A stretch of 64,000 nucleotides of DNA from Macrostomum lignano. Its lineage: Eukaryota. Numbering within the stretch: the stretch's first letter is position 1; each line of letters starts with the position of its first letter. Of the stretch, positions 29,401-41,400 are shown one piece after another. The notes below the pieces were generated by a model. It was not told the origin of the DNA. It saw only the letters and a program-made list of their open reading frames with translations, and did no database searches. A program made the position numbers and the translations under genes. The stretch lies in NCBI GenBank assembly GCA_002269645.1, contig NIVC01000024.1, forward strand, positions 558,001-622,000, in the 5' to 3' direction.

Positions 29401-32400
29401 CTTTCCAGCTGGCACTGGCCTGAGGATTAGCGCTCCGGATGGCGCTGTCCATTATGAAGCTTGGAGCCAACTGAGGCTGCCTTGCTGCTCCAATGACAGC
29501 CTCCTGCCTCACCAGCTCTCAATAATAATCCCCCCTGAATTCCATGATATTCTCTCCAGGATTAAGTGCTCAAATTCGAAGCCCGAATACTTTTAGGATC
29601 CGTGAATCTGAGAGTTCAGACAGACAGACACTAAGACAGACAGACAGACAGACAGACAGACAGACAGACAGACAGACAGACAGACAGACAGACAGACAGA
29701 CAGACAGACAGACAGACAGACAGACAGACAGACAGACAGACAGACAGACAGACACTCTTACGACTGTCTGTGTGTTTAGCGGGACCTGAGTTATGTTAAT
29801 GCGTTATGTGGACCACGCAATTCCGGTTAAAAAATAGAGTCTGTTTTGACAACGCGAAAGGCTAGCTAGGGTTATCTTTTTGTTAACTTGACGGAATAGC
29901 CAGTTCGGGGAAACTGTGGTGGTTCACTAACTACGTTTTGGGGACCGGGTTTGGTGGACCGCAAAAAAACAGTTGGTTTAGTTAGACCTCTTTCGTTGTA
30001 GAAAATTTATTGCTTTAAACTGTTCTTTTGAACTAATTAAAACAGAAATTCTCAAAAAGAACAGATAAAAGCGTTACGACGTCTTTTAATGAAAATATCC
30101 CAAATTCAAACCAATTTATTTAGCATTACTAATCAGGTTAATCGGGTTAAACAAATTTACGATCGCATTAGTTAGTTGCGTCGCGTGAATACAAGAAGGT
30201 GAATGAAAATAAAGCATTTTGAAAATAAATACCGAATCATATCAAATACTAACTGTAAACTCATTAAAACTAATTTAGGTCAAAATGTATGCTTCAAATA
30301 CATGTTAACAAACGTAAGATTCCATTAGTTAAAAAAGGTCATACGAGTAAGAGCCTACAAGAAGTTGAAGGGCATTTTTAATAACGACAAAAGTTACTGA
30401 AACTGAAATTAAATTGATTTGACTACACCAGTCCTATTATACTGAATGAGTTGGTGAGCAATCATATGATAAGCCAATCATTTTACCGACTTTCATCTTT
30501 TCGTTCACGCAGATGATGGCTTAATCTTCTTATTTTTTCTACGAAATATTCTCCTGGACCTTCCCTGCCTCCGTGGTCCGGGACCGCTTCTGTTATTGAT
30601 CTGTCATTGCCTCTCTCACGAATTTCAGCTTACTCAGCCATCGAATCCGCTTTCGTCAGCTCAGCTCTATGATGAACCTTTCTATATTTCTCGTCAATTA
30701 GTGGTTTGAATCTTCTTTTACAGTTCGTTTTAACCTTCATCTCGGTGAAACGCAGTCAGTCTCGTCGAGCTCAGGCGAACAAAATCAACCACAGGCTCCT
30801 ACAAAGGTAGAAAATAAAATTAACTGACAATCAAACAGACACAGAAATCTGTTCCAGTTGTGTCTGTAGGTTAGGTGGACCACCTTCCGAGAGCAAAAGC
30901 CTCAAACAGACTGAGAGAGCTGCATCAGTTGTGTCTGTAGGTTATGTGGACCACCTAAGAGCCAGAGCCTCAAACAGACAGAGAAATCTGTTCGAGTTGT
31001 GTCTGTAGGTTAGGTGGACCAGCTACTCCACAGCACTTCTAGGCGATAATCTGAGCCAGGAATCTCCGAGAGCCTCTCGTTACGCATCCAGATGTTCTGA
31101 CTTGATGCTGGACTAGCTCACTTTCTAGGAATCTGTTCTGATTGCATTCTAACAAACTGAAGCATTCTCGGCACTAAACTTTCTCGGCGGCTCTGAGAGC
31201 CAGAGCCTCAAACAGACAGAGAAATCTGTTCGAGTTGTGTCTGTAGGTTAGATGGACCACCTTCTGAGAGCCAAAGCCTCAAACAGACTGAGAGAGCTGC
31301 TTCAGTTGTGTTTGTAGGTTATGTGGACCACCTAAGAGCCAGAGCCTCAAACAGACAGAGAAATCTGTTCGAGTTGTGTCTGTAGGTTATGTGGACCACC
31401 TAAGAGCCAGAGCCTCAAACAGACAGAGAAATCTGTTCGAGTTGTGTCTGTAGGTTAGGTGGACCAGCTACTCCACAGCACTTCTAGGCGATAATCTGAG
31501 CCAGGAATCTCCGAGAGCCTCTCGTTACACATCCAGATGTTCTGCCTTGATGCTGGACTAGCTCACTTTCTAAGAATCTGTTCTGATTGCATTCTAACAA
31601 ACTGAAGCATTTTCTGCACTAAACTTTCTCGGCGGCTCTGAGAGCCAGAGCCTCAAACAGACAGAGAAATCTGTTCGAGTTGTGTCTGTAGGTTAGGTGG
31701 ACCAGCTACTCCACAGCACTTCTAGGCGATAATCTGAGCCAGGAGTCTCCAAGAGACTTTCGTTACACATCCAGATGTTCTGCCTTGATGCTGGACTAGC
31801 TCACTTTCTAGGAATCTGTTCTGATTGCATTCTAACAAACTGAAGCATTTTCTGCACTAAACTTTCTCGGCGGCTCTGAGAGCCAGAGCCCTAAACAGAC
31901 AGAGAAATCTGTTCGAGTTGTGTCTGTAGGTTATGTGGACCACCTTCTGAGAGCCAAAGCCTCAAACAGACTGAGAGAGCTGCTTCAGTTGTGTTTGTAG
32001 GTTATGTGGACCACCTAAGAGCCAGAGCCTCAAACAGACAGAGAAATCTGTTCGAGTTGTGTCTGTAGGTTAGGTGGACCAGCTACTCCACAGCACTTCT
32101 AGGCGATAATCTGAGCCAGGAATCTCCGAGAGACTTTCGTTACACATCCAGATGTTCTGCCTTGATGCTGGACTAGCTCACTTTCTAGGAATCTGTTCTG
32201 ATTGCATTCTAACAAACTGAAGCATTTTCTGCACTAAACTTTCTCGGCGGCTCTGAGAGCCAGAGCCCTAAACAGACAGAGAAATCTGTTCGAGTTGTGT
32301 CTGTAGGTTAGGTGGACCACCTAAGAGCCAGAGCCTCAAACAGACAGAGAAATCTGTCCGAGTTGTGTCTGTAGGTTAGGTGGACCAGCTACTCCACAGC

Positions 32401-38400: not shown

Positions 38401-41400
38401 TTTGCATTGAATCTATGCTTAATAACTGCTATACACAAACAGACACAAACAGACACAAACAGACACAAACAGACGATTTTCGAAAAATTTTCTAAAATTT
38501 TTCGGTTTACGTGGACCAGACTCGCTCGGTTTAGGTAGACCAGGCTGGAGGTCCAGCTAAACTGAAATGCAAATAACTTTGGAAAAAACCATGCTAGACA
38601 TCCCAAAATTGCTTAAGCCTTTCTTGACCCGCCTGATATTAATGTGAGATCCTCATCAACGTCTTAACCCCACCAGAGACAAAATTATTTGCTGGTCCAC
38701 CTAAGTGGTCTACCTACACCGGGTGGTCCAGCTAACGAGGCTACTGAACTTCCAAAAAGTCCACGTAAACACACAGACAGTAGAACAGACAGACAGACAG
38801 ACAGACAGACAGCACACAGACACACAGACAGACAGACAGACAGACAGACAGACAGACAGACAGACAGACAGACAGACAGACAGACAGACAGACAGACAGA
38901 CAGACAGACGGACAGACAGACAGACAGACAGACAAGGATGTTCAGCAGAGTAAACTGTCAGCCAAGCCCAGCAGCAGAAATTCAGTTCGCCAGCCCCGCT
39001 GACTGTCGGCAGGGCCCGCAGCGATCGATCAGTGTCTCGGGGCTGACAGCTGAGCAGCAGCTCGAGAGTCCACTGGGAGGGTCAGAGGCGGCCAGCAGCC
39101 CCTCAGAGGCGGATGGGAGATCAGAGCCCAAGTCAACAAATACAACGCCAGCGCTAATTTTATTCCTGTTGCTGGGGGTTGGTGGAAAATCAATTTGGCT
39201 CACTAATGCCGAGCGATAATCCTGTTAGCGTCTACGGCATGTCGTCCCATGTTTTTTTCTCTCTTTCCTCCCCCATGTTTTATTTTATAAGCGCTACGCC
39301 TAAGCCACTTGTCTTCTTATGATTCATTTTAAGTTGCAAACTCGCCGAGAGAATATTTTACGGATATTAAACAAGTGTGCCTACTATGAGTAGTCTAGGG
39401 CCAACCGCTCCACACCCTAAAAGCACAGAGTGTACATGTACATGTCTGATGGTGAGGGACAGGGCCTCTGTACACCGTATCTGGTTGAAATTGAATTTTG
39501 CAGAAGTTAAACAAATTATTCCTGCTATGTGCGCATTAACTACTAAATTAAGAGTAGACTGTGCTAAGAAAACTTTACTCGAATTCTATTGCTGCCTGCA
39601 ACTCCATTTTGTGCATTTTTAACCCGAGGCAGGTGTCGCCGCAGGCGCAAAAATCATCGGCCGGACGGCACTGTACATGCGACAGCGAGACGGACGGCAG
39701 TCAGCAGGCACAGCAGGACCGGCAGCGGCCTGCAGCTGCTCATCGGAGCTTCTCCGCCGTGAGAAGTCGCTCGATGGAAGGCCGGCCGCTCAGCCAGATG
39801 GTCGAGGCTGAGTCGTTGCAGCAGCAGCAGCAGCAGCAGGCGGAGACGGACGAGCCAGACGAAGAAGACGTCCCCGTCGATCGCAGAACTCTCGATCGTC
39901 TTCTGGGTGGGTTCGAGTCTCGAACAGCGGAAGACCAGCGACCGAAGCCCAGGCGTGTTGGCAGTCTGCGAATGCAGCCCACAGGCAGCGGGTCGGCCGT
40001 CGAAGGTGGGTGCAACTAAGACATTTTGAGAAGAGCCACATTCAAGTCGTTACTAGTCGGTACTAGTCGATGCTAGTCGTTATTAGTCAGTACTAGTCGA
40101 TACTAGTCGATACTAGTGTATAATCGTCGATAATAGTCGATACTAGTCGGTACTAGTCGGTACTAGTCGGTACTAGTCGATGCTAGCCGATACTAGTCGG
40201 TACTAATCGGTACTAGTCGGTACTAGTCGATGCTAGCCGATACTAGTCGGTACTAGTCGGTACTAGTCGGTACTAGTCGGTACTAGTCGGTACTAGTCGG
40301 TACTAGTCGGTACTAGTTGATACTAGTCGGTACTAGTGGGTACTAGTTGGTACTAGTCGGTATTAGTCGGTATTAGTCGGTACTAGTCGGTACTAGTCGT
40401 TATTAGTCAGTACTAGTCGATACTAGTCGATACTAGTGCATAATCGTCGATAATAGTCGATACTAGTCGATACTAGTTCATACTTGTCGTTACTAGTCGT
40501 TACTAGCCGATACTAGTCGATACTAGTCGGTACTAGTCGGTACTAGTCGGTACTAGTCGGTACTAGTCGATGCTAGCCGATACTAGTCGGTACTAGTGTA
40601 TAATCGTCGATAATAGTCGATACTAGTCGGTACTAGTCGGTACTAGTCGGTACTAGTCGATGCTAGTCGTTATTAGTCAGTACTAGTCGATACTAGTCGA
40701 TACTAGTGTATAATCGTCGATAATAGTCGATACTAGTCGGTACTAGTCGGTACTAGTCGGTACTAGTCGATGCTAGCCGATACTAGTCGGTACTAATCGG
40801 TACTAGTCGGTACTAGTCGGTACTAGTCGGTACTAGTCGGTACTAGTCGGTACTAGTCGGTACTAGTCGGTACTAGTCGGTACTAGTTGATACTAGTCGG
40901 TACTAGTCGGTACTAGTGGGTACTAGTTGGTACTAGTCGATGCTAGTCGGTACTAGTCGGTACTAGTCGATACTAGTCGGTACTAGTGGGTACTAGTTGG
41001 TACTAGTCGGTACTAGTCGGTACTAGTTGGTATTAGTCGGTACTAGTCGGTACTAGTCGGTACTAGTCGGTACTAGTCGATGCTAGTCGATACTAGTCGG
41101 TACTAGTCGATACTAGTCGATACTAGTCGGTACTAGTCGGTACTAGTTGGTACTAGTCGGTACTAGTCGGTACTAGTTGGTACTAGTCGGTACTAGTCGG
41201 TACTAGTCGAAAACTACAGCACTGGAAGGCCATACAAGCCAACTCCTGCAAAGCAGCTGCGGAGCTCAAGGGGTAGAAGGGGTTTTCTAATAAAAAATTC
41301 ACACCAATCCAGCGACGGAACGGATGGCCTCGCATTGCTTTGCATACTAATTCGTTTAACCTCTGCTTCAGTTGTGTGCAGCAAAACACTTTTGGTTTTT

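Follow-up and report, generated by a model that had tools for sequence, protein, structure and literature searches.

A repeat unit with an internal satellite between CAGA microsatellites upstream of Tiam/sif-like exons in Macrostomum lignano: growth in place or transposition?

The flatworm Macrostomum lignano is a model for regeneration and stem-cell research, and the richness of its genome in simple and tandem repeats is unexplained (PMC5730564). Such repeats make up 15% of the genome of the sequenced line, which carries duplicated chromosomes, and the authors of the Mlig_3_7 assembly reported that simple repeats and the redundancy from extra chromosomes hampered assembly (PMC5730564). Here, we have analyzed a stretch of 64,000 nt (NIVC01000024.1:558001-622000, assembly GCA_002269645.1; hereafter the window) that contains, upstream of the conserved exons of a Tiam/sif-like RhoGEF gene, a repeat unit of about 9 kb. 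The source is this flatworm and not an arthropod: a combined query of three conserved genes from the window matched M. lignano proteins at 99-100%, and the locus of one of these proteins proved 100% identical to the window over 22,017 bp. Its ends match each other in inverted orientation, it lies between two (CAGA)n microsatellites and it encloses a satellite array on the sense strand of the gene. The question raised by this locus is whether a mobile element brought these repeats in, as held by the original prediction of a microsatellite-targeting transposon family whose terminal motif had expanded into a satellite inside a gene, or whether they arose on the spot. We found that the unit is a real repeat domain whose mobility is unproven. 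The reading that we favor, tentatively and with a little less than even confidence, is that the unit grew in place, however its founding unit may have arrived. Three stages appear together at this locus, namely dispersed old copies, microsatellites that may have grown from tetranucleotides of the unit and a kilobase satellite of recent origin. The locus lends itself to the question of how arrays arise and whether a mobile element starts the process, and the unit may help to explain the repeat load of M. lignano.

The ends of the unit are defined by ACTGTCTGTGTGTTTA at 29763-29778, which is the exact reverse complement of 38766-38781. This predicted 16-bp pair proved correct: when up to two mismatches were allowed, the 16-mer had only these two matches in the 64 kb, compared with 0.04 expected from dinucleotide-preserving shuffles. 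The inverted match extends to 23 nt at 87% identity (20/23); with 16 of 16 exact and 20 of 23 extended positions, inverted repeats of the kind that bound a cut-and-paste terminal inverted repeat (TIR) transposon are present at the limits of the unit. A gapped extension to ~60 nt, which includes a second motif copy at similar spacing, was weak (z = 3.4); a stricter local alignment returned the 23-nt core alone, and alignment of both ends revealed no relation beyond ~60 bp. The window contains 46 copies of the recurrent motif, GTGGACC, and 45 of these fall within the unit; the 17 copies on both strands of ~249 kb of other M. lignano DNA correspond to the chance rate. The 13-mer GTTTANGTGGACC (two mismatches or fewer) had 57 matches versus 3.4 expected, all except one within 29774-38770. 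On the + strand, copies outside the satellite lie at 29774, 29802 (29802-29814), 29948, 29976, 37470, 37666, 38505 and 38529, and copies on the - strand are confined to the last 230 bp of the unit (38550, 38694, 38707, 38722-38733 and 38758). The copies originally predicted near 29.80, 37.47, 37.67 and 38.51 kb, and in inverted orientation at 38691 and 38759, were all found again.

The same motif closes the modules of the internal satellite. Three module types make up this array together with one compound module of 309 bp: A (68 bp) is present 16 times, C (71 bp) 7 times and B (238 bp), in which a 68-like tail follows an insert of 170 bp, 18 times. All of the modules end in GTTGTGTCTGTAGGTTA[G/T]GTGGACC, with minor variants (three GTGAACC and one GATGGACC), as had been anticipated for A and B; the satellite monomer and the terminal motif are related. 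Mean pairwise identity within types is 98.5% for A, 97.2% for C and 97.6% for B, and the array shows periods of 68, 238, 306, 377 and 1,533 bp. With head-to-tail monomers, a higher-order period and high identity, it is a higher-order satellite. In its latest event, a block of 1,979 bp was duplicated, and the copies share 99.0% identity at a 1,533-bp lag. The satellite is much younger than the ends of the unit. Thus, the view that the motif expanded into a satellite within the gene holds in so far as the array is built on the motif of the ends, is younger than they are and lies upstream of conserved exons; the mobile origin that it included is unsupported.

The order of the modules follows their ends: those ending in TTAGGTGGACC were followed by a B module (19 times), and those ending in TTATGTGGACC by an A or a C module. 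Before an A module, the junction reads TTA[T/G]GTGG-A-CCACCTAA, a near-palindrome that is found in 14 copies. A perfect 17-bp palindrome at every A-A junction was also considered and was rejected, as it is perfect once and the other 13 copies have one mismatch. No significant similarity could be observed between the B-module insert and the sequence to the right of the array beyond ~18 nt matched by eye. It was also observed that each module (30831-37059, + strand) carries, in the sense orientation of the gene, CTGTAG/GTTAGG or CTGTAG/GTTATG, a sequence similar to a 5' splice site. The array would present ~43 such donor-like sites, all in sense, in a probable intron.

On the basis of these features, we propose that the unit may be a single-locus, non-coding composite derived from one quasi-palindromic unit of ~68 bp (...CAAACAGACAGAG-AAATCTGTTCGAG-TTGTGTCTGT-AGGTTAGGTGGACC). 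Old, diverged copies, keeping mainly a 13-25-bp core (TGTCTGTG..GTTTAnGTGGACC), would stand at both margins, those at the left in + orientation and those at the far right, in a foldback cluster of 290 bp, in - orientation; unequal exchange or replication slippage would have amplified the young A/C/B array (6.2 kb) in place from the same unit. In this view, the 16-bp 'terminal inverted repeat' consists of the outermost + copy at the left and the outermost - copy at the right, which face each other. The (CAGA)n tracts may be slippage outgrowths of the unit's CAGACAGA at the left and of its TCTG at the right, where the copy is inverted and reads CAGA on the + strand, and they need not be a pre-existing target. 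The visible effect of the block is the addition of ~9.3 kb upstream of the Tiam/sif-like conserved exons. We favor this proposal because of pervasive tandem amplification nearby, microsatellite junctions in register with the unit, a quasi-palindromic monomer, extra internal 'left ends' and the absence of any sign of mobility.

First, tandem repeats occupy 29.06 kb (45%) of the window and form ~35 arrays, whose periods range from 4 to 117 bp, so that amplification in place is the local norm. Second, the flanking microsatellites, (CAGA)34.5 at the left and (ACAG)41.8 at the right, both read CAGA on the + strand, in the same orientation as predicted, and their starts coincide with the unit's own tetranucleotides (at the left, CAGACAGA; at the right, where the copy is inverted, TCTG). 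The left end, including the last CAGA repeats, aligned to the monomer over ~57 bp (z = 5.3), the microsatellite falling on CAGACAGAG of the monomer and a 10-bp spacer on AAATCTGTTCGA; the right end, on the - strand, aligned over 34 bp, starting with an exact TCTGTTC (z = 3.3-3.8). Internal copies have expanded in a similar manner. In the copy at 38455-38525, a 10-mer array, (ACACAAACAG)4, occupies the position of the monomer's CAAACAGAC (z = 6.4), and a (GTCT)4.5 tract at 37623, followed by GTTC, lies upstream of the motif copy at 37666. With tract starts in register, slippage from the unit's tetranucleotides is at least as good an explanation of the flanks as targeting, and such outgrowth accounts for the common reading on the + strand without a pre-existing target. 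The idea of microsatellite targeting is unsupported by these data and stays a hypothesis that has a reasonable rival. Finally, the monomer folds on itself through ACCTAA/TTAGGT and ACAGACA/TGTCTGT pairing, so that inverted matches between copies are easily obtained. The unit resembles ordinary higher-order satellites of euchromatin whose edges are degenerate in its head-to-tail modules, higher-order periodicity, recent segmental duplication, older marginal copies and setting in a region that is 45% tandem repeat; it differs from them in the exact 16-bp inverted pair, the cluster of inverted motifs at one end and the perfectly kept dispersed 13-mer.

Several observations argue against growth in place. 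A monomer profile (nhmmer) detected the left end at E = 0.76 only and failed to detect the right end, and the extension of the left copy past the microsatellite (TTTTAGGATCC / TCTGAGAG) was not significant. If 29755-38785 were removed, the two tracts would fuse into a single (CAGA)~76, which is what insertion into a microsatellite predicts. The motif is polar in orientation, with + copies at the left and - copies confined to the final 230 bp, which is the pattern of DNA-transposon subterminal repeats. Moreover, GTTTACGTGGACC is exact in three internal copies and matches at 12 of 13 positions in the terminal copy, with unrelated flanks, and this conservation looks more like binding-site constraint than like the neutral decay of array edges. 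The perfect 16/16 match also stands within ends that are otherwise ~70% alike.

These points raise the possibility that the unit is a non-autonomous DNA transposon of TIR or foldback type that carries reiterated subterminal motifs for transposase binding, was inserted into an existing (CAGA)n tract and had one of its subrepeats expand later into the satellite. We consider this explanation possible, though on the unlikely side. It would account for an exact 16-bp inverted pair where 0.04 is expected, for motif clusters that face inward within ~225 bp of each end, with - copies at the right extremity alone, for a 13-mer core perfectly conserved in unrelated contexts and for flanking tracts that share an orientation and can be joined. 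CAGA-type arrays amount to 3.1% of the sampled M. lignano DNA, so that a pre-existing tract is plausible, and by our arithmetic the probability that both ends abut such arrays by chance is ~1e-3. Precedents exist in Tetris of Drosophila virilis (PMC4079207) and in Micron, as cited in PMC7878876. On the other hand, similarity between the ends is limited to ~23-60 bp, the unit contains three further 'left ends' (37442, 37655 and 38505), and its own CAGA/TCTG is in register with the microsatellite junctions on both sides. No second copy was found in the ~291 kb of sampled M. lignano DNA, in which none of the 20 other CAGA-type arrays adjoins the motif, and neither a transposase nor a remnant of one was found in the unit.

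The searches for mobility bear directly on this alternative. No second copy of the arms, the monomer or the extended motif was found in the remaining 55 kb of the window, nor in other M. lignano loci totalling 227 kb, which were reached through protein look-ups; a sample of this size can exclude a family only if it exceeds roughly 8,000 copies. In metagenome contigs, exact-pattern scanning found neither the satellite core nor the terminal 21-mer, and the satellite core had no exact match in viral contigs either. A protein query made from all stop-free stretches of the unit arms, which was meant to catch spurious gene calls on other copies, likewise gave 0 matches. With respect to coding capacity, the unit has no open reading frame (ORF) of at least 110 aa except microsatellite read-through. 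Ten scanned reading frames of its arms had no Pfam match, including to a transposase remnant, and Rfam and tRNA scans of the unit found nothing. The existence of a transposon family, with neither a second copy nor an ORF or Pfam transposase remnant, is therefore unsupported. No target-site duplication (TSD) is present at the inverted-repeat boundaries 29763/38781. When the ends are shifted outward by 4-8 bp (29755/38785), any duplication of 2-10 bp matches trivially since both flanks are (CAGA)n, and the TSD cannot be scored there. Finally, the long mirrored subrepeat arms of a foldback element were not found: - copies occur only at 38550-38781 and the + array is unmirrored. The right-end module itself folds back, with an inter-arm similarity of z = 5.8 and a DNA fold of z = -2.9.

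Comparison with known systems gives a similar picture. In the TIR transposons En/Spm (CACTA) and Ac/Ds, a short subterminal motif is reiterated near both ends. The unit is like them in carrying an irregularly spaced motif that points inward within a few hundred bp of both ends, and unlike them in that it has no CACTA- or hAT-type termini, no 3-bp or 8-bp TSD and, in the sampled DNA, no autonomous partner or second copy. FB elements, like Tetris, are of foldback type, with terminal subrepeats from which satellites are seeded. Like Tetris of D. virilis, the unit is non-coding, its ends consist of reiterated short inverted units and the same unit has been amplified into a tandem array (PMC4079207). 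In contrast with Tetris and foldback elements, its arms are not mirror images (~47 + versus ~5 - copies), the similarity of its ends covers only 23-60 bp, and neither a family of copies in the sampled DNA nor a TSD at its inverted-repeat boundaries was found. Micron of rice, as cited in PMC7878876, likewise has the same microsatellite in the same orientation on both sides. However, targeting by Micron rests, according to that citation, on many independent insertions, whereas here a single locus is concerned and the microsatellite motif also occurs in the repeat unit. It is already known that satellites can arise from short repeats of mobile or formerly mobile elements (Tetris, PMC4079207; Helentron-type non-autonomous elements, or HINEs, PMC7492417).

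A HINE, like DINE-1 or Cg_HINE, is a further explanation for the unit, and one that we regard as very improbable. Elements of this type carry short inverted repeats in subterminal position, a left module with a tetranucleotide microsatellite and a tandem array at the center, and they lack a TSD. The parts list of Cg_HINE of Crassostrea gigas is similar: 11-12-bp subterminal inverted repeats (subTIRs), GTCY/GTCK microsatellites, central satellite-like repeats and no TSD (PMC7492417). The unit shares with it short inset inverted repeats, a GTCT-type microsatellite, a central satellite-like array and the absence of a scorable TSD; its tracts read (GTCT)n on the - strand, and its 16-bp inverted repeat lies 4-8 bp inside the microsatellite edges. 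DINE-1/DINE-TR1, as cited in PMC7492417, are grouped with Cg_HINE as tandem-repeat-carrying Helentron derivatives. Nevertheless, the unit has no palindrome 3' of the array (no hairpin with a stem of at least 6 in the 200 bp after it, 37055-37260) and no 5' subTIR upstream of the microsatellite (no inverted repeat of at least 8 bp between the sequence upstream of the left microsatellite and either the 200 bp that follow the array or the right end). Its flanks are CAGA repeats rather than a T-rich or TT site, two microsatellites lie at its margins versus one inside the left module, and its 6.2-kb array is far longer than the HINE arrays described and is ~1.1 kb and ~1.7 kb away from the ends, compared with 10-500 bp and ~60 bp in Cg_HINE. 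Pairing across 12 nt is possible between the left arm (CTGTCTGT) and the microsatellite end (ACAGACAG), in an order of parts that differs from the Cg_HINE scheme. The mapping of the unit onto a HINE was rejected, as it fails on the 3' palindrome, the position of the subTIR and the insertion site.

We also considered that the motif copies might be host-factor binding sites under selection, forming an intronic regulatory or architectural cluster of which the symmetry and the satellite would be by-products. The exact conservation of GTTTACGTGGACC in unrelated contexts, the 14 near-palindromic junctions and the position inside a gene fit this possibility, but the satellite variant GGTTA[G/T]GTGGACC differs from the dispersed copies, and those homeologous and paralogous stretches that were read lack the motif. 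This explanation appears quite improbable. Another concern is that the length and higher-order pattern of the array might be partly an artefact of long-read assembly of a repeat-rich and partly duplicated genome. Difficulties due to simple repeats and redundancy were reported for this assembly (PMC5730564), and the array does hold a 2-kb block repeated at 99%. However, the higher-order pattern of the module variants is consistent and their divergence is graded, nothing in the sequence of the unique arms and of both ends is out of the ordinary, and an artefact could alter the copy number rather than create the structure. The chance that assembly error explains the pattern seems very slim.

A more far-reaching proposal is that Macrostomum harbors undescribed non-autonomous DNA elements with CAGA-like ends and reiterated, putative GTTTAnGTGGACC binding sites, which home to (CAGA)n and whose subterminal unit can expand into kilobase satellites within genes. 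We find this doubtful. If paired copies exist elsewhere, there would be a microsatellite-associated family of elements in flatworms; otherwise, the locus is one more case of amplification in place. The homing of such an element, if true, would link the two repeat classes that make the M. lignano genome hard to assemble.

The coordinates of the features of the unit and of the larger arrays around it are listed in Table 1.

Table 1. Features of the repeat unit and major tandem arrays in the window
Feature	Position	Strand	Details
Left (CAGA)34.5 microsatellite	29617..29754	+	TRF
Left inverted-repeat arm (16 bp exact, 23 bp at 87%)	29763..29785	+	3' part of outermost + repeat unit (TGTCTGTGTGTTTAGCGGGACC)
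Left subterminal cluster	29774..29988	+	four motif copies (29774, 29802, 29948, 29976)
Left unique arm	29989..30823		A+T-rich, non-coding, unrepeated in window and sampled loci
Higher-order satellite (6.2 kb)	30824/30831-37059	+	head-to-tail A, C, B and compound modules
Right unique arm	37060..38494		isolated + motifs 37442-37482 and 37655-37678; (GTCT)4.5 at 37623-37642; (ACACAAACAG)4 at 38433-38474
Right-end foldback module	38495..38781		+ motif copies 38505 and 38529; all - copies of the unit
Right inverted-repeat arm (38766-38781 exact)	38759..38781	-	3' part of outermost - repeat unit
Right (ACAG)41.8 microsatellite	38769..38934	+	begins at GAACAGA, counterpart of the monomer's TCTGTTC
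14-mer x208 array	7726-10744		within PAK-like gene
20-mer x114 array	18044-20321
(TCTA)317 array	27768-29028
10-mer x116 array	40045-41209
(TAGA)295 array	43091-44269

The host gene is on the + strand, and its conserved exons, including those for the PH and DH domains, were found at 45.07-52.10 kb. A homeologous sif-like copy is annotated with a product of 1,545 residues, which suggests that several hundred N-terminal residues would be encoded upstream of the conserved exons and that the unit probably lies within an intron of the gene. The homeologous locus, NIVC01002899.1 (L002), is 91-96% identical in DNA over 44.8-61.8 kb of the window; the stretch compared (NIVC01002899.1:12097-38574) ends ~4.5 kb before the expected position of the unit. 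An ORF segment at 23467-23500 (+) that reads MGNQLCGSE... is a possible N-myristoylated start, as in Tiam/sif proteins; if it is genuine, exon 1 would lie ~6 kb upstream of the unit. A 34-bp repeat in 12 copies at 44639-45051, which contains GGACC but not GTGGACC, lies directly upstream of the sif-like PH-domain exon, and no relation between it and the 9-kb unit was found. A search with the sif/Tiam-like protein returned no M. lignano protein, despite the expectation that the query is >90% identical to one. The annotated sif-like proteins of M. lignano (1,545 and 1,556 residues) have no Pfam record and seem to be missing from the searchable protein set.

Several minor observations were made elsewhere in the window. 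A run of broken ORFs at 62357-63940 (-) resembles the RNase H/reverse transcriptase end of a non-long terminal repeat retrotransposon, and the two pieces of it that were scanned had no Pfam match. Two intact single-exon C-type lectin ORFs (Pfam Lectin_C) are present at 15096-15920 (-) and 60696-61586 (+), the former having no gene call in the public annotation and the latter no protein record. The order of genes in the window, COesterase - PAK - ... - sif-like - Na/solute symporter, is found again on other contigs (L002; L003, NIVC01000260.1; L007/L008). One of these copies, with 91-96% DNA identity, is a homeologue or chromosome duplicate, and the older paralogous copies encode proteins that are ~64-66% identical. 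Some arrays predate the duplication, for example (CTGT)n at 52.8-53.5 kb, which lies within aligned blocks.

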